DNA of 64,000 bases from Glycera tridactyla (lineage: Eukaryota). The stretch's first letter is position 1, and every line of letters begins with the position of its first letter. Below are positions 8,791 to 26,988 of the stretch, in pieces. The stretch covers positions 117,552,001 through 117,616,000 of the forward strand of contig OZ286462.1 of the NCBI GenBank assembly GCA_965644265.1. The letters run 5' to 3'. The translations under genes and the position numbers were made by a program. The notes below the pieces were generated by a model that was given only the letters and a program-made list of their open reading frames with translations, ran no database searches and had not been told where the DNA came from.

Positions 8791-9670
8791 ATTGTTTAGA
8801 GTGTGATGGTGAATCGAGCTGAACAAACCCAGCCTACACCCCAGAAAAGCATGCTACAAATCGCAAACAATGCGATCACACTGGTAAGATACGGAAAGCA
8901 AACTTGTATCCATTTGAGATATTCCACACAAAAAAATGTAACTAGAATTTGCTTGAATGGATTTGTGTGGTACTGAGGAGAGTCCACACGACGCAGTGAT
9001 TTCAATAGGCAGAGTAGCGTGGTATAATTGATTGCACCAATTTGGATGTATCTCGCTTATCTGCTCTAACTGAATTACGTACTTTCCTAGAGAGTGAGGG
9101 TGAGCGAGACCAATGGACAGACAGAAAGACAGGTGGATGGCAGACAGATGAATAGACAGCTCAACAGACAGACTGACAGACCGATCGACAGTTCCTTTGT
9201 AATGGACTGATGTCTACGTTTTTCATGCATTAGTGATGATATTTTGATCAACATCATCGCTGTCAATCTAAGCATTCACTATTCCCATTCCAAAAAAATC
9301 AGATAAAAGCAAAGAAATTTCATTGTGGATGAAAGGTCTCTCATGAATTCCAATCATCGAACATTCACTTCTATCTGTTCACAAACGACTGAAGTGACTG
9401 TACATAGACGAAAGATAACGATCCAGTTCAAAGCGTGGCCATCCTGTCGTCACAGAGTTGATGGAGTAGCTAGGTGAATGCAATCGATTGTTCATTCAGC
9501 TGGTGGTTCTACATCAGCAAGAAGCACCCACATCATGTTGTCGAGGGTGAGATGGGAACGGGTGTAGTAAATCAGGTACTTTCAATGCTAGGCAGCACGA
9601 GGACCAGGTGAATGCTCAATCGCCGAACCGTGTCGATGCCGACAAATGCAAGGTATATAGATACTCCCTC

Positions 9671-11782
9671 ATGGAGCACCCGCTTACCCCGCCCCCACCG
9701 CCACTGCCACCAGCACCAGGCACGCAACCGTCAGACCGTGATCAACCTCGCGATCTGCCAATTATTCCCACTGCAAGCGATTCGCGGCTAACTAAAGACA
9801 CAAATAAAATCGTGCTTTCTGCAATAAGGTCAGCAATATCGTCACATATTGAGGATATGAGCTCTGAGGTGATCGAGTCACACCCTGACCCAGTAAGAAA
9901 CTTAATCGATGAACTGAATGAAAACGAGCCAGACACTCAGGGAATTGCCACGCAAGATAGTATCGAGCTAACAGCTGGTGCAGTGTCAGAAACACCTGCC
10001 GCCCCTCAGACTCCAGCAGTCAAACCTGCCCATGAATCGCCGTCAGTCAAACCAGTAAACTCGGCATCTTCTAAGAAAAAGAACAAAAAGAAACGTAAGA
10101 GAATTCATCACGCAGCATCGCCTGATGACTCAATGGGTATTGGCACATCTAATAAGAAACTAAATCGTGCGAATGACAGTCTGATCGATCTGGCAGCCGA
10201 AAATGGGAGGGAAAGTGGATCAGAGTACGAGACTGACTCGGAAGCTGAAAGTATGATGATTGACGATAGAGATGCATCCATCCCCCCTGGTCAAGTACCT
10301 AGAGACACTCAAGACAGCCATGATAGTCATGAATCCACGTTAAATAGTCAAATTGAGCCCATGGGTGAACTTGATGGATGGCAAATGTTCGACAACGCCC
10401 TAAACATCTCGAATCGACCGTCACCACCAGAGGCGCCACCATCAGCGCCACCTATAACACTACCAGAGTTACAACAGGAAGTAACGTCAAAAGAGCCACG
10501 AGAGGGACCTGAACCTGAATCTGTGGTGGAAACATACACTACTTCGACACCAATGGAAATGAAAATGAAGTTAAAAGCTGACCTGAAAGCTGAACTAATA
10601 GCAGACATGCGATCGACGATTGAGAAAGATCTGGCAGCAAAAATGGAGGTCACTATTGCTCAGAAAATTCGTCAAGATGTTCTAAAAGAAGTGAGCCATG
10701 AAATGCTTGACCTAACAACTCAAGTAAGAAAAATGAGCAAAGAACTGGAAGACAACTCGCGCACAATCATCATGCTGCGAAGTAATGTTGAGAGATTGTC
10801 TGGTAATGCAGCGATTAACAGACAACCACCAACACAACATGAAGACAATGATCAGTCAAGTAGCAGTCCCAGTGTAGCACATCGAGTAGAAAATCTCGAA
10901 TTGTCGGACAGATTAGATAGCATGATCATTGAAGGGTTGGATTTTAACCCTGAATATTCCTTATTAGATAACGTTGGCTATACAATCTGCGACAGCCTTG
11001 ACATATCTCTCTTCCACAAGGATTTCATTAAATGTTCTTTTATTGGCAAACCAAACAAAGACAGCCAACGCCCAATATTGGTAAAATTCAAGGATGTCGC
11101 TCTGAAACGACATCTAATGAAATTGAAAGGGAAACTTCGGGGATCTTCTATATTCTTTAAGGAATTCCTCACCACCAAAAACAATAAGATATACTACGAG
11201 GCTCGCACCGCCAAGAAGAATAAGCTTCTAGACAAGGTATGGACCTATGATGGCCTCGTTTGGGCACAAGAAGACACAGACTCCAAGCCTAGTGTCTTGA
11301 CAGATGCAGATGCACTTCACACGATAAATATAGAAGCATCACACAAAAGAGGCAGGATTCCCAACGACGACAGGCACCACAGCAACCACTTGGACAGCCA
11401 GAACACAAGCAACAGAGACTGTCAAAGGCGACTACCAACGAGGGAAGACAATACAAGAGAATCAGCCAATCATTCAAGGGATCATGACCACCATAGCAAT
11501 CGCAACGGTAATTCAGGGAGACAGGCCTATGAAGCACAGAATTCTACCGGCGACCACCACCGATCACGGGACCCAGCGCTGGAGTCACGCTCTATAAACA
11601 ACGACTCACGAGTTGGTAACAACGACGGAAATCGGCGGCAACCCAGCGAGCGTCGTCCACCCAGCAGTCAATACGGATACAATAACAGGCAGAGAAACAA
11701 GTATCAGAGTAGGAAAAGAGGACCAAGTTGGAATAACGAATGGCCGGAGCTGCCTCCTATGCAGGATAGAAGATATCACTAG
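9671..11782 (+). CDS. LINE ORF1p: disordered N-terminus with basic patch, coiled coil, L1-type RRM and CTD, R/N/D-rich tail
   Basis: Coiled coil MKMKLKADLKAEL...NVERL; RVENLELSDRLDSMIIEGL; RPILVKF..K..L; EFLT..N..IYYEAR; WTYDG, a pattern typical of Transposase_22-like ORF1p. First ATG is at 9671; the frame is open from 9575. Confidence 0.85.
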   Translation: MEHPLTPPPPPLPPAPGTQPSDRDQPRDLPIIPTASDSRLTKDTNKIVLSAIRSAISSHIEDMSSEVIESHPDPVRNLIDELNENEPDTQGIATQDSIELTAGAVSETPAAPQTPAVKPAHESPSVKPVNSASSKKKNKKKRKRIHHAASPDDSMGIGTSNKKLNRANDSLIDLAAENGRESGSEYETDSEAESMMIDDRDASIPPGQVPRDTQDSHDSHESTLNSQIEPMGELDGWQMFDNALNISNRPSPPEAPPSAPPITLPELQQEVTSKEPREGPEPESVVETYTTSTPMEMKMKLKADLKAELIADMRSTIEKDLAAKMEVTIAQKIRQDVLKEVSHEMLDLTTQVRKMSKELEDNSRTIIMLRSNVERLSGNAAINRQPPTQHEDNDQSSSSPSVAHRVENLELSDRLDSMIIEGLDFNPEYSLLDNVGYTICDSLDISLFHKDFIKCSFIGKPNKDSQRPILVKFKDVALKRHLMKLKGKLRGSSIFFKEFLTTKNNKIYYEARTAKKNKLLDKVWTYDGLVWAQEDTDSKPSVLTDADALHTINIEASHKRGRIPNDDRHHSNHLDSQNTSNRDCQRRLPTREDNTRESANHSRDHDHHSNRNGNSGRQAYEAQNSTGDHHRSRDPALESRSINNDSRVGNNDGNRRQPSERRPPSSQYGYNNRQRNKYQSRKRGPSWNNEWPELPPMQDRRYH

Positions 11783-11787
11783 CAAGT

Positions 11788-12915
11788 ATGAGTCTCTTAC
11801 CATTATTTAGAAGACCAGTTCGTAGGATATACCCGACTCCTCGTCGGTACTCTGCGATGGATGATATTTTAGCCAATGATCGTGTACGACGACCAGGGTC
11901 TGATCACTTCACTCAAATGGAACGGACAGTACGGTGCTTTGATCCACCTAACATCGTCGTGGTTGGTGCCTCACATGCAGTACATTTGGTGGACTACATA
12001 AATGCCCTAACACAGGACAGTCACCTTTACAAATTTGTAAACTCCACTAACGTCAAAGCGTTTGCAGTTGGCGGTGCCAAGTATTGGTCCTTAAAAGATA
12101 ACCTACAAGGTAGAGAAATGTCAGCAAAGAAGAAGAGCATCTACGGTGACCAATTGTCGACATTGTCATCGTCCAACTTCAAACCAGACTGAATTATAAT
12201 GTTAATAGGATCGAATGATACCGATGACGTTAATAGTCACATACACCAAATAAAGAGATCAAACACTGCCTACAATTACGGATGGAAAGCCCCCATTGAA
12301 GGGAGGATATGGCTTGACCAGTTGGAACCAGAGGTCGTGAAATTTATGGATTTCCTACGCTGTCTATACCCCGATATCCCCTGTGGGGTTGTCCCTGTGA
12401 TCCAACTTGATTGGTGGAATGAACATGCCCGTAACTTTGCCGACAGACTTGATCATCTTATGACATCCAAGTTGAGAGTTTCTCACTTCACCCGCAAAAT
12501 CACTGCAAAATCACTATATCAGAAGTGCAAGGTGGATGTTCATGATGACATCCTATCTACTTTTATGGACGATGGCAACCTACACTTGAGTGACACGGGG
12601 AATACTGTCCTTTTACAGGACATTCTACCTAGTGTGTTCGATTGGTGGAGGTCAAAACAACTACAAGAACATCCTGAACGCTACATATGTGAACGCACTC
12701 CACGTCGACGAAAACCAAGAAATGCAGGGAAGCGTCATACACCAAGCCAGATGGAAGTGCTTTTAGTTGGAGCCCATAATATTGAAGACGTTCGCACAGT
12801 CGCCCTACCACCCACAAAACGGATGAAATCAGTGATCAAAAATAGGTTCCTGGACAAGTCACATCGCCTGTCTGTGAGTAAAACATTCTCTCGCTATCAA
12901 TCTAAGCTGGCTTGA
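11788..12915 (+). pseudogene. Stand-alone SGNH/GDSL hydrolase (esterase) ORF with one in-frame TGA (12190-12192)
   Basis: Track ORFs 11788-12192 and 12199-12915 share one frame. Blocks: I VVVGASH, II AVGGAK, III PD*IIMLIGSND, V DDGNLHL. Confidence 0.78.
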
Positions 12916-13108
12916 TGTAGAACAACACCAGAGTTTAGTTCAGTTATTATCATGACATAGATGTTTTATAGTCACCTAGTATGATGCCGGGTTGAAACAA
13001 TCGAGTAAAATCAAAAATCAAATACATCTACTTGTTGACCTGCATCTCATTGTACTCTCAATATGTTTGAGTACTGGAGCTTCGTCCACATATGGTGTCC
13101 GCATGTAC

Positions 13109-14241
13109 ACTGCAGAAGTGAATCCATGCAGGCAACACTTTGCTGCAATGCCTACATTACTATATTATTCAACATGCCCAGACATTCTGCTGCAGCTCTG
13201 CAACTCAGTGAATCTCGCTTTTCCTTCAAATGCCGGATAATTACATGAGAGCTGCTGGAGTGAAACCGTACGGGTGACTTTACTACTACTTTACTCATCA
13301 TATCTAAAGGGTTGCCGGAATGTAATCATGCGGATGACATTCTGCTGCAGCTCTGCCACTCGGTAAATCTACGTGATCAGGTTTGCTTTCCCTTCAATTG
13401 TCGGATAATTAAATGGGAGCTGTTGAAGTGAATCCATGCGGGTGACACTCTGCTGCAGCGCCTGCAATTACTACATTGTTCAACATGCACAGTGGGCTGC
13501 CGGAATGAAATCATGCGGATGACATTCTGCTGCAGCTCAGCTTGGTAAATCTGCATTGTCAAGTTCACTTTTTTTTCAAATGCCGGACAATTATATGGGA
13601 GCTGCCGGAGTAAATCCACTAGGGTGACACTCTGCTGCAGTGCCTGCCTTTACTGCATTATTCAATATGCATAGAGGGTTGCCGGAATGAAATCATACGG
13701 ATGACATTCTGCCGCAGCTCTGCTCAAGTTCACTCTTTCTGCCGGATAATTGCATGGGAGCTGCCGGAGTGAATCCATGCGGGTGACACTCTGCTGCAGC
13801 GCCTGCAATTACTACATTGTTCAACATACACAGTGGGTTGCCGGAATGAAATCATGCGGATGACATTCTGCTGCAGCTCTGCTCAAGCTCACTCTTTCTG
13901 CCGGATAATTGCATGGGAGCTGCCGGAGTGAATCCATGCGGGTGACACTCTGCTGCAGCGCCTGCAATTACTACATTGTTCAACATACACAGTGGGTTGC
14001 CGGAATGGAATCATGCGGATGACATTCTGCTGCAGCTCAGCTTGGTAAATCTACGTTGTCAAGTTCACTTTTTCTTCGAGTGCCGGACAATTATATGGGA
14101 GCTGCCGGAGTAAATCCACGAGGGTGACACTCTGCTGCAGTGCCTACCGTTACTACATTACTACATTGATCAGCATGCCGGAATGAAATCATACGCATAT
14201 GCTGCCGGGTTGAAGTCATTCGGATGACAGCCTGCTGCAGC
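13109..14241 (+). repeat. Inter-ORF array of ~12-13 41-nt hairpins within 159-182 bp higher-order units
   Basis: Consensus GYTGC-CGGARTG-AA-WYC-ATGCG-GRT-GA-CAYTCTG-CT-GCAGC at 13109, 13251, 13311, 13419, 13496, 13601, 13678, 13760, 13837, 13919, 13996, 14101 and 14201; unit lengths 168, 182, 159, 159 and 182 bp. Confidence 0.9.
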
Positions 14242-14662
14242 ATCAGCAACCCCGACATCTCCAATCTCCAATTGCTGACCTTGAGGAAACCAAACGGAGG
14301 GACATCGATTGAGCTGTAATATGGTGATTGGCAACCATGCCTATAAAAAGGATACTTAATGTGATTCTATGTTGTGAAGGATGAACTGATTAGCAGAGTT
14401 TATTTAACATGTTAGGAGCACACATTTGAGCCACGACTGATATTTATGGACACATGGTGGTATGTTCTATCTTTCTTTCATGACTGTGAAGCATATACAT
14501 ATTTATCGAATCTCCAGAAGGCAGGCAATATTGTTGGATGGCTCATACATAAATTCGCGAGGTACTCATTTCCTACCGCATCCATACAAATCCAAACTCA
14601 TCTTTACTCTACATTGCAGCATCATTCTCATTTGTACTTTCTTATATCACTGATTTATACAA

Positions 14663-17600
14663 TTGATTTCATCACCAAACTCCACTCTGTTTAATAGTCT
14701 ATCGGACATCCCAACCCCAATACTATTCCATCTTCCTATCGACATCATAATCAATAACAATAGAAGGCGACCAACCCATGTTTTCCCCTCAGCCAATCCC
14801 TTGTCTGATTTTGAATATACTACTGCCTCTCTCTCAAACTTACCTGGTATATCTTTTGGATCCCTGAATATCCAGAGCATAACACGAAAAATTCATGATG
14901 TAAAGATATTTTTAGAAAAAAGTAAATTAGATTTTCTTGTTCTAACAGAATCCTTTCTTAATGACAGCATTGGAGATGAAGAACTGGCTGTTCCTGGATA
15001 TGAATTCTTAAGGTTTGATAGAACTGACTTGAGTGGTAAATCGGGTGGTGGTGGTCTACTGATCTATTATGCTTCTCAGTATTGTGTATCATCTCTACCT
15101 GATATATCTCTTTGTTCTCAAGCAGTAGAGACTGGGTGGTGTAAGATCCAATTCAATAAATGTCAGCCACTAATATTGGGAGCACTCTACCGACCGCCAG
15201 ATGGCCAAGCAAATGAGTTTATTACCCAGGTTACAGGAAATCTAGAAAATCTCCGTGACAAATGGCCTGTCCATAGTGTGATATTGATGGGAGATATGAA
15301 TTTAGACTTGAGCAAACAACGTGGTCCTGGAGTGAAAGCATATCGTGAATTCCTACGTGACCAGTCATTGTACCAACTCATCAATTCCCCAACTCGAATC
15401 ACGCCGACCAGTAGTACAATAATCGACCATATATTAGTTTCAGATAAGAGTTATTTCAACCAATCTGGTGTGATTGATCCGGGCATGAGTGATCACGCTC
15501 TGATATTTATGAACAGGAAACGTCAGAAATTATCTAAAAAGAAATGCGACTATCAGTTTAGGAGTTATAGGAATTTTAATGAGGTGGATTTCAAAAGAGA
15601 TCTCAGTAATATTGATATTGGACATATTGTTGCAGAGAATGATCCCGATGTATCCGCCGAATACCTGGCAAACGAGATAAATAAATGTCTGAATGTACAT
15701 GCTCCTGTAAAGAGACGTAAATTTCGTGAATTTTCTCAGCCCTGGGTAAATCATGAATACTTGAGCATGATTGATCTATGTGAATATCGTTCTCATCTAT
15801 TTTATAAGTCACCAACTGAAATGAATTTGGCATTGAAAAAAGAAGCCCTGAGGCGTAAATATTTTTTGAAAAAAGAACTAATTAGTACGTATGTTGAGGA
15901 CAATATTGAGCGGCATGAGCACAATCCTAAGAAAATGTGGAAGTCAATCAAAGAAATATGGCCACTGACAAAGAAAGGCACAGCCAAGCCAAAACTTGAA
16001 TCTGAAGCCAATTTTGCTCGAGCTTGTGAGATAAATGATTTTTTCTGTGACATTGGTTCAAAACTTGCAAATAAGATCCCTGATGTTGCCCACCCTCCGA
16101 GACCCACCTTACACTATCCGCCAGTATTTGAGCTACATCCCATCACGAAAGATGATGTATCAAAAGTTATTCACGAGCTGAATAGAACAACATCTGCTGG
16201 GAGGGATGGTATAACGAGCAACTTATGTCGCATGTTTCCAGGAAATATTCTTCATGCCATGACAGTCATATGTAATCAATCTTTTGCATCAAGTGTATTT
16301 CCCTCTGTCTGGAAGGATAGTATAGTAACTATCCTACACAAAGGAGGTAGTGACTTTAGTCTATCAAGTTTTCGTCCCATCTCTATCATACCAACTCTTG
16401 GCAAAATTATGGAGAAAATTGTTCATCGACAAGTGTATTCATATCTAACGAAGTATGAAATCTTGTCGGATGCCCAATTTGGATTCAGGGAGGGGTATTC
16501 GACTGGGGCATGCCTGACCAGCTTTTTGGAGTCAATCTTCATGGGCGCTGATCGGTCATGTCCCACGGGAGTCCTCTTCCTGGATCTGAAGAAGGCGTTC
16601 GATACAGTTGATCATACTCGTCTTCTTTCAAGGCTTCGCGAGGTGGGCTTTAGATATGGCACAGTTGAATGGTTTCGGTCGTACTTATCAAATCGCCAAC
16701 AGTCAGTGAAATTCGATAGTGCTATATCCTCAAATCGTACGATTACCTGTGGAGTGCCCCAAGGTTCCATCTTGGGGCCTCTTCTGTTTGTGATATATGT
16801 GAATGAGCTGCCAAATATTTTGCATGACTGTACCCCTCACTTATATGTCGATGATACTGCGGTGTGTGCCAGGGCATCAAGTGAAGCTGAATTGGTTGTA
16901 AAACTGGAGAGGGCTATTGCTTTATTGAGTGAGTGGTTCATGTACATGAAACTCTCACTGAATCTCGACAAATCCTCAATCATGATATTTGGTACCCGTC
17001 CTCAGACACAACGAATATCATTCACATCTCTCCTATATGGGGAACATATTATTCAGCGTGTATCCACCTATAAGTATCTAGGTATTATGTTAGATAGCAA
17101 TCTATCATTTGATGCACATGTCAGCTACTTATTAAGAAAGGTCAATATTCGTAAGTCAGCGCTGGCACACATCCGCCCGTACATCAGTGATCGTAGGGCT
17201 TTGTTTCTGTATCACTCTCTGATTCAGTCTCTCCTTAGCTACAATGGTCACATTTATGGAAGTCTGAACCAGGAACAGGCGAATAGGCTACAAGTAGCAC
17301 AGAATCGTTGTTTGAGAGTGGTGCGGAGTAATCCCAATTGCTACTCAGCCACCGAATGCCATAGAGCCTTGAAGGTACCTTTTCTTGGACAGCTGCGGAA
17401 TAGGCAGCTTATTCTTGAATGTTATAAGATGATTAATATGCCGTTGAATAATAGTCATGATTTTAGTCTAAGAACACGAGCAAGTGTGACTGGAAGGCTG
17501 ACTCGTCAGTCTGCCAGACATGATCTCCAACTGCCCCGCCTCAGAACGCAATTTGCAGCGAGAAGTGTGATTTTTAGAGGGATAAAACTTTGGAATTCTG

Positions 17601-17680
17601 TGCCAGTAGAACTTAGAGAAAGTGCTTCTTTGGCAATCCTAAAGAAAAAATGTAAGTTGTATTATGAGCACCTCAAATAA
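14663..17680 (+). CDS. LINE ORF2p, APE endonuclease plus reverse transcriptase (uninterrupted, 1005 aa from a TTG)
   Basis: APE: SLNIQS, LTES, RFDR, GGGGLLIY, LYRPP, GDMN, PTR, IDHIL, SDH. RT: QFGFR, LDLKKAFDTVDH, GVPQGSILGP, YVDDT, KYLGI. C-terminus IKLWNSVP..LR. Confidence 0.96.
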   Translation: MISSPNSTLFNSLSDIPTPILFHLPIDIIINNNRRRPTHVFPSANPLSDFEYTTASLSNLPGISFGSLNIQSITRKIHDVKIFLEKSKLDFLVLTESFLNDSIGDEELAVPGYEFLRFDRTDLSGKSGGGGLLIYYASQYCVSSLPDISLCSQAVETGWCKIQFNKCQPLILGALYRPPDGQANEFITQVTGNLENLRDKWPVHSVILMGDMNLDLSKQRGPGVKAYREFLRDQSLYQLINSPTRITPTSSTIIDHILVSDKSYFNQSGVIDPGMSDHALIFMNRKRQKLSKKKCDYQFRSYRNFNEVDFKRDLSNIDIGHIVAENDPDVSAEYLANEINKCLNVHAPVKRRKFREFSQPWVNHEYLSMIDLCEYRSHLFYKSPTEMNLALKKEALRRKYFLKKELISTYVEDNIERHEHNPKKMWKSIKEIWPLTKKGTAKPKLESEANFARACEINDFFCDIGSKLANKIPDVAHPPRPTLHYPPVFELHPITKDDVSKVIHELNRTTSAGRDGITSNLCRMFPGNILHAMTVICNQSFASSVFPSVWKDSIVTILHKGGSDFSLSSFRPISIIPTLGKIMEKIVHRQVYSYLTKYEILSDAQFGFREGYSTGACLTSFLESIFMGADRSCPTGVLFLDLKKAFDTVDHTRLLSRLREVGFRYGTVEWFRSYLSNRQQSVKFDSAISSNRTITCGVPQGSILGPLLFVIYVNELPNILHDCTPHLYVDDTAVCARASSEAELVVKLERAIALLSEWFMYMKLSLNLDKSSIMIFGTRPQTQRISFTSLLYGEHIIQRVSTYKYLGIMLDSNLSFDAHVSYLLRKVNIRKSALAHIRPYISDRRALFLYHSLIQSLLSYNGHIYGSLNQEQANRLQVAQNRCLRVVRSNPNCYSATECHRALKVPFLGQLRNRQLILECYKMINMPLNNSHDFSLRTRASVTGRLTRQSARHDLQLPRLRTQFAARSVIFRGIKLWNSVPVELRESASLAILKKKCKLYYEHLK

Positions 17681-18243
17681 GAATATATGGGGTAATAGTA
17701 TCCAGGATTGATCGGTGAATTGGCTATAGTGTTGCATTTATATATATGAGGTTTTTGAATAGGTGGGATTACATGGGTTGGAACGAGTTTGCATCTGATA
17801 TTTTTATATATATGTACTTTCTACTACATACTGTTTTATATGTGGGTGATATGATAGACTCTGGCTGCATATTAGTAGTAGTCGACAGATATATAATTTT
17901 TTTTAATTTTTCTCCTACATATTACCATACCCCATATTTCTGTAGATGCTCTGCCAATATTCCAATTCTCCTCGACATTTAATAGATATATTATCCAATA
18001 TCAATTTTCCAATTTATCCAATTTCAATTATGAGTTTCCCCATCTGACTCAAATAGATCTATCAGCCATCGATCAACTATCTGAAATTTATAAACATTGT
18101 ATATAATAACTCTGTGTTCTCCGAGCGCCACCGTATTTATATGTGATTATATCAAATTTCTCTTGTATATATTTATTTGTATTGGTTCACCTGTTGCAAT
18201 AGCTCGTTGTATCCCTGAACCTGTTTTGCTGTATGCCCACAAA

Positions 18244-18271
18244 AGCTTGTAGTGCGACTTCGGTCAAAGCT
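18244..18271 (+). other. 3'-terminal stem-loop of LINE-b with a C(UUCG)G tetraloop
   Basis: AGCTT...GAC-TTCG-GTC...AAGCT just upstream of AATAAA and the tail; such 3' stem-loops are RT-recognition elements in L2/CR1 LINEs. Confidence 0.6.
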
Positions 18272-18989
18272 ATACTGTGAATAAAGTTTTTCAAATCAAA
18301 TCAAATCATTCAATAGCTGAGGTTCAATAACAACTGTCTTTTCAGGACCCTTTTTCTCACGGTGTTTCGGAATTATATATGGAGCAAGCCAGATGTTCCA
18401 AGAATATTGCTCACATGTATTCTCATATGTTCCAAGAGGCAAAAAGTGGGGATATAGTGTGTGACGACTGGAATAGTAAAAGCCCGTTGTGCGTATGGAA
18501 GTCTATTCTTGTATGTATGACAATGAACAATTTCTATAATTTGCGTGGAGTAGGGGTTGTTCCCGGCAGAGGTGGAGCATGTTCTGTCTATGAACCCAAG
18601 CAGGTTGGAATGCCGTTGAACCTAATGAAGCGATCGGACTAAACAAACCACATGACCAATTCATATCCCGAAACATAGATCTGGTATCATCGCTCCAATT
18701 AGTCCCATTGGTGCACTACCACCATGTTGCCACCCCAATCGTACAACTAGAGAACGAAGAGGAGTGTACGTGGAGGTGAAGATGATTTGGAAGATATTCC
18801 CATTATATATCTACTCACGTGAAGACAAAATACTGACTAGGAACAAACAATTACCTCCAACTTAGATAGAGCACCCCACCGCATATTAGCAGACCGAGTT
18901 GGAGGGGGAGCGGGTGGAGGAGTGGTGGGGGTGATAATCACGATAGTCAGTATAATAACCAGCCACACATTTCGTGGACAAAAACACGG

Positions 18990-19330
18990 TTACATGATCA
19001 AAGTTGACGGATCAGAGAGCTTAGACTCGAAAATGTCAATACCTCCTGAAGTCTTGATATGCAGCTGAAGTTCATTTAAAATGTGACGGGCTCTATATCT
19101 GAAGCTTGACTTTGCTTTCTCCATCCAAAATCTAGGTACCAGAAGGGTCTTCTTTGAGCTTGAGAGTGTTGAGCAATTGTGATGATGTTCTAAAGGACTC
19201 GATTGGTTTGATGAGTACGATGGTGCATTTTTGTTTAGAATTTTGAACACTTGAATGGCAGTGTGTTTGATCGGAATGCTCGCAACCGCATCACTTTGAC
19301 CATGGAATTCATGATCACCCATGTCTTATT
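18990..19330 (-). mobile_element. Old CR1/L2 3'-end fragment embedded in the duplicated unit (copy A)
   Basis: Translation TLLVPRF..KAKSSFRYRA..ILNEL..IKTS..IDIFESKL matches the CR1/L2 ORF2 C-terminus; paralogue at 51330-51558. Confidence 0.7.
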
Positions 19331-25014: not shown

Positions 25015-26988
25015 CAGCATATAGCTGCTCCCATCACCACACTACCACAGATAAATGCCCAAGTGTGAATACTGTCTGGGTATTGGCATAAAAATATATG
25101 TAGAATGTGACAGCAATGACCTATCACTATCATATATAGCTGCTGCCATCACCGCATCACAACAGATGGATGCTCAAGTGTGAATACTGGCTGGATATCA
25201 CCATAACAATGTATGTAGGTTGTGACAGCTCTGACCTATCACTGTCATATATAGGTGCTGCCATCACCACATCACCACAGATGGATGCTCAAGTGTGAAT
25301 ACTGGCTGGATATCACCATAACAATGTATGTAGGTTGTGACAGCTCTGACCTATCACTGTCATATATAGGTGCTGCCATCACCACATCACCACAGATGGA
25401 TGCTCAAGTGTGAATACTGGCTGGATATCAGCATAACAATGTATGTAGGATGTGACACCTCTGACCCATCACTGTTATATATAGGTGCTGCCCTCACCAC
25501 ATCACCACAGATGGATCCCCATGTGTGAATACTGGCTGGATATCAGCATAACCAAGTATGTAGGTTGTGACAGCTCTGACTCCTCACTGCCATATATAGC
25601 TGCTGCCGTCACCACATCACCACAGATGGATGCTCAAGTGTGAATACTGACCGGATATCAGCATAATAATGTAAGTAGAATGTGTCAGCTCTGACCCATC
25701 ACTGTCATATATAGCTGCTGCCATCACCATACTACCACAGATGGATCCTCAAGTGTGAATACTGGCAGGATATCAGCATAATAATGCATGTAGAATGTGA
25801 CACCTCTGACCCATCACTGTCATATATAGCTGCTGCCATCACCACATCACCACAGATGGATCCTCAAGTGTGAATACTGGCTGGATATCAGCATAACAAT
25901 GTATAAGGAATGTGACACCTCTGACCCATCACTGTCATTTATAGGTGCTGCCATCACCATACTACCCCAGATGGATCCTGAAGTGTGAATACTGGCTGGA
26001 TATCAGCATAATAATGTATGTAGAATGTGACAGCTCCGACCTATCATTGTCATATATAGCTGCTGCCATCACCATACTACCACAGATGGATCCTCAAGTG
26101 TGAATACTGGCGAGATATCAGCATAATAATGCATGTAGAATGTGTCATCTCTGACCCATCACTGTCATATATAGCTGCTGCCATCACCATACTACCACAG
26201 ATGGATCCTCAAGTGTGAATACTGGCTGGATATCAGCATAACAATGCATGTAGAATGTGTCAGCTCTGACCCATCACTGTCATATATAGCTGCTGCCATC
26301 ACCACATCACCACAGATGGATCCTCAAGTGTGAATACTGGCTGGATATCAGCATAGCAATGTATGTAGAATGTGACACCTCTCACCCATCACTGTCATAT
26401 ATATATAGGTGCTGCCATCACCGCATCACCAAAGATGGATCCTCAAGGTGAATACTGGCTGTATATCAGCATAACAATGTATGTAGAATGTGACACCTCT
26501 GACCCGTCACTGTCATATATAGGTGCTGCCATCACCACATCACCAAAGATGAATCCCCATGTGTGAATATTGGCTGTATATCAGCAAAACCAAGTATGTA
26601 GGTTGTGACAGCTCTGACTCATCACTGCCATACATAGGTGCTGCCATCACCACATCACCACAGATGAATCCCCATGTGTGAATATTGGCTGTATATCAGC
26701 ATAACCAAGTATGTAGGTTGTGACAGCTCTGACTCATCACTGCCATATATAGGTGCTGCCATCACCACATCACCACAGATGGATCCCCATGTGTGAATAT
26801 TGGCTGTATATCAGCATAACCAAGTATGTAGGTTGTGACAGCTCTGACTCATCACTTTCATATATAGCTGCTGCCATCACCACATCACCACAGATGGATG
26901 CTCAAGTGTGAATATTGGCAGGATATCAGCCTAAAAATGTAAGTGGAATGTGACAGCTCTGACCTATCGGTGTCATATACTAGTGCCA
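25015..26988. repeat. 115-bp minisatellite, ~17 units
   Basis: Anchor CAGATGGA recurs at 25163, 25278, 25393, 25508, 25623 and so on to 26891 (period 114-119, mostly 115). Confidence 0.97.

Follow-up and report, generated by a model that had tools for sequence, protein, structure and literature searches.

Two old questions about LINEs concern the translation of ORF2 from a bicistronic RNA and the way in which the encoded proteins choose their own RNA (cis-preference), and for neither of them do the best-studied LINEs have a defined RNA signal. In stringent-type LINEs (L2/CR1-like elements such as eel UnaL2 and zebrafish ZfL2), a 3' stem-loop is recognized by the element's own reverse transcriptase. 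This principle is restated in PMC5135761. Such a stem-loop is, like the hairpins that I will discuss in this article, small, conserved, cis-acting in the sense RNA and kept through compensatory change, but it is single-copy and 3'-terminal, whereas the hairpins form a multi-copy, internal array. The signals described for ORF2 translation include the UAAUG stop-start of SART1 with its downstream structure, an IRES between the ORFs of mouse L1 and the unconventional reinitiation of human L1 (PMC3894237; works cited in PMC3045867). They share with the array a place between ORF1 and ORF2 and the same unsolved step, and they can work without an ORF2 AUG; however, each is a lone element whose spacer measures between 0 and a few hundred nucleotides, none of them is a covarying tandem of hairpins, and the distance from the array to ORF2 is, unlike theirs, long and variable.

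Outside this step, the Xist A-repeat consists of about eight tandem, conserved, GC-rich, hairpin-forming cores joined by variable, U-rich linkers; it serves as a multivalent platform whose partner is SPEN. The array resembles it in its tandem hairpin cores on variable linkers (the platform role of the array being a proposal of this article), but the A-repeat belongs to a host long non-coding RNA with a known SPEN partner and is unrelated to the array in sequence. The dispersed packaging hairpins of single-stranded RNA viruses, and retroviral psi, cooperatively recruit the virus's own coat or nucleic-acid-binding protein, while LINEs are thought to use cis-preference rather than a defined packaging signal. 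These packaging hairpins are again many degenerate copies with a conserved recognition motif and an otherwise variable sequence, although the viral ones are scattered through coding RNA and the array is a tandem repeat. Mouse L1 5' UTR monomers and satellites born from transposable elements are, like the array, LINE-internal arrays in which unit number shifts by unequal exchange, but these are DNA promoters or neutral, with no strand-specific covarying fold and no contrast between core and linker. Lastly, the retroviral constitutive transport element (CTE) has a stronger effect in more copies. The CTE binds NXF1 (PMC10158996), and an NXF1-binding element in the 3' UTR of human L1 was reported by Lindtner et al. 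(2002), as cited in PMC3045867. Like the array hairpin, it is a stem-loop in unspliced retroelement RNA; its internal loops matter for its function and it recruits a host protein directly, but it is one long two-loop hairpin in the 3' region, with no sequence or Rfam match to the array. The GACA strand of the array hairpin presumably resembles the CTE.

The array is a real signal in LINE RNA and one that has apparently not been described. The preliminary description of this DNA, made from the sequence without searches, had known of no such inter-ORF hairpin array, and none was found in Rfam or in the literature searched in full text. LINE inter-ORF spacers, usually taken for junk, can carry structured RNA, and in this case the compact, clearly selected 41-nt module has a readable mutational record, in which stems covary, certain unpaired bases are fixed and the loop is free. 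It recurs 5-16 times at a single place in many copies, apparently young ones, and so offers direct experimental handles.

The LINE copy and its spacer

The window is the 64,000-nucleotide stretch of Glycera tridactyla DNA that was analysed, and it contains one LINE with the following parts:

9575 to 18308, plus strand: LINE copy, one element, its 3' end a (TCAAA)n tail
9575 to 11782, plus strand: ORF1 remnant, with a coiled-coil region and a conserved C-terminal domain
11788 to 12915, plus strand: second ORF, weakly GDSL/SGNH esterase-like (sub-threshold matches only)
12916 to 14653, plus strand: non-coding spacer of about 1.7 kb from the esterase-like ORF to ORF2
14512 to 14528, plus strand: second conserved spacer motif, YCCAGAAGGCA(A)GGCAG
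14654 to 17680, plus strand: ORF2, APE endonuclease and reverse transcriptase, an open frame of 1009 codons
18242 to 18308, plus strand: conserved 3'-terminal stem-loop (18242-18271) with a UUCG-type loop, then AATAAA and (TCAAA)n

The copy is 5'-truncated within ORF1, since similarity to a fuller copy elsewhere in the genome (L031, 99% identical) begins at 9575. The ORF1 protein has no sequence match in Pfam or PDB, its feature matches (Atlas) stay below 0.9 with L1 ORF1 families as weak leads, and an AlphaFold model from a 3-sequence alignment, with a pLDDT of only 38.7, did not establish an RNA-binding fold. The ATG of the esterase-like ORF lies 5 nt past the ORF1 stop, and its frame has an in-frame stop at 12193-12195 in the window copy and is open throughout in L031. 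As a candidate CR1/L2-group LINE, the element is characterized by the APE and RT domains of ORF2 (Exo_endo_phos and RVT_1), the 3' stem-loop and the (TCAAA)n tail, the esterase matches being sub-threshold only; the closest public ORF2 proteins are 35-38% identical, and the nearest of them (38%) carries no family name. In the 630-nt 3' UTR the order is stem-loop, AATAAA, (TCAAA)n. The sequence of this stem-loop is unrelated to that of the inter-ORF hairpin, which means that the array did not arise by copying what is likely the RT recognition site; nor is it that site itself, being internal and accompanied by the separate stem-loop at 18242-18271.

The hairpin array

Within the spacer, the hairpins and their remnants lie as follows:

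13109 to 14241, plus strand: array of hairpins (41 nt each; 12 full units, two partial) in sense orientation with the LINE, between ORF1/esterase and ORF2
13109 (degenerate), 13311, 13419, 13496, 13601, 13678 and 13760, plus strand: starts of full or degenerate units
13837, 13919, 13996, 14101 and 14201, plus strand: starts of further units
13251 (3' truncated) and 14174 (5' half only), plus strand: partial units
13760 to 13800, plus strand: type A reference unit, stem CGGAGUG/CACUCUG, apical CC/GG, -20.7 kcal/mol
13837 to 13877, plus strand: type B reference unit, stem CGGAAUG/CAUUCUG, apical AUC/GAU, -13.9 kcal/mol
14201 to 14241, plus strand: final unit, stem CGGGUUG/CAGCCUG, apical GUC/GAU, -18.9 kcal/mol
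12985 to 12998, plus strand: 5' hairpin-arm remnant upstream of the array
13181 to 13200, plus strand: 3' hairpin-arm remnant

Each unit folds as a 5-bp outer stem, a CU bulge, a 7-bp stem, a 2x2 AA/GA loop, a 2-3 bp apical stem and a 5-nt loop, as the preliminary description had drawn it; all stem and loop strings quoted there are present in the unit alignment, and RNAfold returns the drawn structure for the three main types, with z-scores against dinucleotide shuffles of -3.7, -2.3 and -2.8 (type A, type B and the last unit) vs -1.3, -0.5 and -0.7 for their reverse complements. The 5-bp outer stem holds for the window, but in other lineages it is effectively one of 4 bp, because pair 1-41 is frequently A-C outside lineage W (the lineages are given below). 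Among the window units 93.9% of pair cells pair, compared with 29-67% when the 3' partners are slid. When whole arrays are folded globally, minimum free energy structures recover the local hairpin for only 15-50% of units, since arms of separate units can pair together; that types A and B each covary within the unit is an argument for local pairing.

The units are separated by G-poor spacers of 36-67 nt, with two longer gaps, and are organized in a higher-order repeat of 159-182 bp built from two alternating hairpin types; over 13308-14042, the periods given by Tandem Repeats Finder are 159 (93% matches) and 182, with 77 and 82 as sub-periods. As this repeat copies units, the 12-13 hairpins first counted represent only about four independent variants with about five compensatory events, and the covariation within the window alone is thinner than the first account implied.

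Relatives of the array in the genome

A DNA search of the Glycera tridactyla genome (2.04 Gb, 207 contigs) returned the array in two near-identical copies (L031 and L032) and weaker hairpin-sized matches at seven further loci, and 10 kb around each of these nine loci (L031-L039) was examined, which together with the window gives ten sources. A same-strand ORF2 lies just downstream of the hairpins at all nine loci, and the sources fall into five lineages:

Lineage W: the window, L031 and L032
Lineage X: L034-L037
Lineage Y: L033
Lineage Z: L038
Lineage V: L039

Compared with the window, amino-acid identity across the five lineages is about 69% in ORF2 and about 47% in ORF1, and ORF2 of W and X agrees at 73%, 86% and 41% of nucleotides at first, second and third codon positions. 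Lineages X and Z are closer to each other and share a spacer repeat.

A covariance model built from the window (lineage W) units has no match elsewhere in the 64-kb window and gives 110 matches over the ten sources, where those that score 19 bits or more map without exception, in the sense orientation of the LINE, to the stretch from the upstream ORFs to ORF2; the array thus recurs at the same place in other family members, which the preliminary description had put forward as a check. Arrays have 5-16 units (8-16 in intact or long copies), and the short ones, in L032 and L037, belong to copies without an upstream ORF1 match that look 5'-truncated. Genome-wide, the same model gave at least 146 matches at a minimum of about 42 loci, with 150 scored of about 1.4 million loose candidates. 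Of these loci, 22 were shown to lie just upstream of ORF2, ten by sequence and 12 by coordinates, the latter with a same-strand ORF2 match 0.5-1.6 kb downstream that is 59-71% identical (endonuclease part), and one further locus has its ORF2 match 5.2 kb off; this placement drew on 125 scored of 13,282 ORF2 candidates. Two ORF2 copies about 81% identical to that of the window had no hairpin match among the small scored fraction of candidates, and their DNA similarity to the window starts only at the conserved ORF2 start. The nearest public ORF2 contigs show no hairpin in the only 570 and 333 nt of upstream sequence that they contain.

Covariation and selection on the fold

When 60 distinct units are taken together, 94.0% of cells pair and double changes occur at 11 of 15 pairs, in an alignment that had been fitted to the model. 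For this reason, lineages X, Y, Z and V were held out, their 41 distinct units were re-aligned with MAFFT, giving an alignment free of gaps, and the structure was taken from W: 92.8% of cells are paired vs 28-67% when slid, double changes remain at 9 of 15 pairs, and no shuffle came up to the observed values. RNAalifold independently recovers 11 of the 15 pairs, eight of these with compensatory changes, and when all 820 column pairs are ranked by MI-APC, pairs 17-23 and 16-24 come first and second, with six proposed pairs in the top 16. In a tree-aware null (a FastTree phylogeny with Fitch reconstruction, on which the substitutions of each column were placed anew 1000 times), the paired fraction was 0.937 compared with 0.784 +/- 0.038 and a null maximum of 0.896 (0/1000), and 12 pair types changed on both sides compared with 5.6 +/- 1.8 (1/1000). 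Ten same-branch co-changes fell in proposed pairs, nine of which kept pairing, or 0.67 co-changes per proposed pair vs 0.18 in other column pairs. With a weak tree and only 41 columns, this test is to be read as support and not as a p-value.

The constraint on the hairpin is also evident between lineages, where consensuses have 34-39 of 41 positions in common compared with the 41% third-codon-position identity of ORF2 (W/X), and hairpin conservation is near that of second codon positions. BLAST comparisons of the 1.7-2.6 kb spacers give 3-130 hairpin-to-hairpin segments per lineage pair, and these make up nearly all of the similarity; the few other matches are hairpin-arm remnants, the repeat shared by X and Z and a small module near ORF2. 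Little change is seen in the lower stems or at A14, A27 and C35, the CU bulge is conserved as well, and variation is found in the apical loop (positions 18 and 20-22) and at position 15. The first unit of the array carries a compensated A8-U32 pair common to W, X and Z, which suggests that a multi-unit array is older than their split. The hairpin is a probable structured RNA element whose predicted structure is conserved across LINE lineages at a fixed position in the element, and the selection on RNA shape first proposed from the window is supported by the held-out covariation, by the excess over the tree-aware null and by matches confined to the sense strand.

What the array may do

With moderate confidence, I propose that the array is a cis-acting element of the sense RNA, a multivalent protein-binding platform kept by selection for LINE replication. 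One 41-nt hairpin recurs in it 5-16 times, with fast-evolving, G-poor linkers in between, and each hairpin would be a candidate sequence- and shape-specific site at which a protein would read the internal loop, the bulge and the stems but not the variable apical loop, while repetition would bring numerous molecules of that protein onto the LINE RNA. A constraint on stems and unpaired bases that leaves the apical loop free is the pattern expected of a protein recognition site. The linkers, on the other hand, are lineage-specific and unalignable, yet mostly 36-64 nt long, with a G content of 14-19% compared with 29-36% in hairpins. The variable distance to ORF2, the conserved stems and unpaired bases and the regular spacing of units on G-poor linkers favour the platform.

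The most natural candidate partner would be the element's own oligomerizing ORF1 protein, which would nucleate an RNP on the RNA that encodes it, and the alternative candidate is a host export, stability or localization factor of the NXF1 type. ORF1 is only about 47% identical between lineages and the stems barely change, which is not the co-variation expected if a fast-evolving ORF1 protein reads them. The esterase is not the partner of the array, given that lineage X has lost the esterase body, keeping a 51-codon ORF with its N-terminus, and has retained the array. It is a more tentative idea, which I would sooner doubt than accept, that an invertebrate LINE clade uses a tandem hairpin array as a dedicated assembly or packaging signal, that is, as a high-affinity, multivalent loading site for its own protein; if this were true, non-LTR retrotransposons would have a cis-element of a new class, one that would explain how the RNP forms on its own RNA. 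On this view, different LINE families of the genome may each have their own hairpin code.

The main rival, which I regard as unlikely but worth keeping in mind, is that the array serves ORF2 translation, by attracting ribosomes or cofactors of initiation or by providing a shunt with its structured block, so that the ATG-less ORF2 would be reached over a spacer of 1.7-2.5 kb. ORF2 does lack a conventional start, as the preliminary description had noted, with its first in-frame ATG at codon 211 in lineage W and codon 192 in lineage X, while its frame has a stop 25-35 codons ahead of the first conserved residues (inter-lineage conservation starts near 14750, at NRRRxTHVFP). Start codons are not depleted from the spacer, and its 52 ATG triplets (counted over 1747 nt) make plain scanning or reinitiation to ORF2 implausible; the array, moreover, always sits between the last upstream ORF and ORF2, and a review treats ORF2 initiation in non-LTR elements as unsolved and considers that long intergenic regions could hold IRESs (PMC3894237). 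However, the end of the array lies anywhere from about 410 to 1000 nt from the opening of the ORF2 frame among copies, unlike IRESs that position the start, and the motif YCCAGAAGGCA(A)GGCAG, at a near-constant 254-263 nt from the conserved ORF2 start in three lineages, is a better candidate; together these argue against a start-positioning role. Stem sequences are also conserved more strictly than a stability block requires, and an Rfam IRES (including the dicistrovirus IGR type) is rejected both by this non-fixed distance and by a permissive Rfam scan of 9000-19000, in which no family matched at E values up to 1.

Much less probable is an action of the array as DNA, in which tandem transcription-factor sites would form an internal promoter or enhancer, perhaps for a sub-genomic ORF2 transcript. 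Mouse L1 monomers provide the precedent of regulatory tandem repeats in LINE non-coding regions, the hairpin core is strongly conserved and contains the palindrome CTGCAG, and ORF2 would be easier to translate from a sub-genomic transcript. A duplex site, however, gives no reason for double changes in 9-11 of 15 pairs, and it leaves unexplained both the excess of G-U over A-C among the cells of proposed pairs (117 vs 20) and pair 7-33, a G-U pair in almost every unit of every lineage. As G-U pairs would be mismatches on the opposite strand, this signal points to sense-strand RNA, and the hairpin is strand-specific to the sense RNA.

Slightly less probable again is a neutral or selfish palindromic minisatellite, with likeness between lineages due to recent ancestry, concerted evolution or exchange between elements. 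Unit number does change by whole higher-order repeats among near-identical copies (12 vs 16 in L034 and L035, 13 vs 6 in the window and L032), and repeats inflate apparent covariation within one array, but the covariation holds in held-out lineages and against the tree-aware null. A minisatellite drifting as a whole unit at one rate is rejected, as only the 41-nt cores can be aligned across lineages, these being conserved to about the level of second codon positions; exchange of arrays between lineages would have carried the linkers along. The preliminary description had considered that the array might occur elsewhere as an independent satellite, but no large free satellite was found among the 146 best genomic matches, and the loci, at least 42 in number, have no more than 16 units each. 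Finally, a 115-nt, 17-copy satellite in the same window (25019-26979) has a fold z of +0.2, with no excess, which indicates that tandem repetition alone does not create the hairpin signal.

The least probable reading is that the hairpins are substrates or decoys of RNA processing or silencing (small-RNA precursors, or nuclease or editing targets) that would modulate host control, for although many near-perfect stems on an abundant transposon RNA would be plausible targets, their 12 bp plus 3 bp, interrupted by a bulge and an internal loop, are short for Dicer- or Drosha-type precursors, and the conserved, specific unpaired bases fit recognition better than processing.

Other readings of the spacer

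A coding array is rejected because the higher-order periods differ by lineage (159, 179 and 93-101 nt) and no long frame crosses the array, a hammerhead or other small ribozyme was ruled out by inspection and a blank Rfam scan, and a kink-turn, in which tandem sheared G-A and A-G pairs come right after a 3-nt bulge, is inconsistent with the internal loop, which is a symmetric 2x2 one of AA/GA (in V, AA/AA or AA/UA), and with a 2-nt CU bulge located 7 bp away. Near ORF2, RNAalifold predicts a long-range pairing of GAAGGCA, within the fixed motif, with UGUUUUC at the ORF2 start, a prediction that carries no evidence as both sides are invariant. For the spacer as an intron there is no convincing conserved donor, and stops follow in the ORF2 frame. 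The CCAG/AAGG of the fixed motif follows a pyrimidine-rich tract and resembles a 3' splice site.

Conserved elements around the hairpin array

Several short elements lie on either side of the hairpin array and at both ends of the LINE, and the positions of those downstream of the 5' UTR are as follows.

Positions of conserved elements in the LINE copies
Window 11783-11790, plus strand; L034:3476-3482; L039, minus strand: junction of the ORF1 stop and the second-ORF ATG
L034:3480-3635; L036:3573-3728: residual ORF of lineage X
Window 14512-14528, plus strand; L034:5748; L033:5898; L038:5369; L039, minus strand: second conserved motif of the spacer, YCCAGAAGGCA(A)GGCAG
Window 18242-18308, plus strand: conserved 3'-terminal stem-loop, then AATAAA and a (TCAAA)n tail

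A short 5' UTR of about 58 nt (L031:122-181; L034:1040-1096) holds the conserved ACATGGAGTAACGCAC, which contains a two-codon mini-ORF (ATG GAG TAA) and lies directly upstream of the ORF1 start MPSG in both L031 and L034. In lineages W (the window copy, L031 and L032), X (L034-L037) and V (L039), the ATG of the second ORF, the esterase, follows the ORF1 stop by just 2-5 nt, a layout that suggests termination-reinitiation coupling. Lineage X has lost the body of the esterase and kept the hairpin array; what is left is an ORF of 51 codons, the first 22 residues of which match the esterase N-terminus.

The second spacer motif is preceded by a pyrimidine-rich tract. In three lineages it stands 254-263 nt upstream of the point where conserved ORF2 sequence begins, and in V the distance is 196 nt. 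It resembles either a 3' splice site or an element that positions the start. Its GAAGGCA is predicted by RNAalifold to pair with UGUUUUC at the ORF2 start, although neither side varies.

Two of the ten copies combine a small array, of just 6 hairpin units in L032 and 5 in L037, with the lack of an upstream ORF1 match, which suggests that they were 5'-truncated within the array; an upstream ORF1 match is likewise missing from L033 and L038, yet their arrays hold 13 and 8 units. Reverse transcription may often stop at the stable hairpins. All five lineages end in the stem-loop, AATAAA and (TCAAA)n tail, and the stem-loop, whose inner hairpin is GAC-UUCG-GUC (loops CUCG or CAUG in other lineages), is probably the RT recognition site.

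Other repeats

A satellite at window 25019-26979 (115-nt unit, 17 copies, 90% identity) served as the negative control for fold excess, and none was predicted on either strand. Elsewhere in the genome, G000:C10:69478565-69512378 holds five ORF2 5' fragments that match with identical scores, on one strand and spaced by 3.2 and 13.5 kb, which from these coordinates alone looks like a tandemly duplicated block carrying a piece of the LINE.
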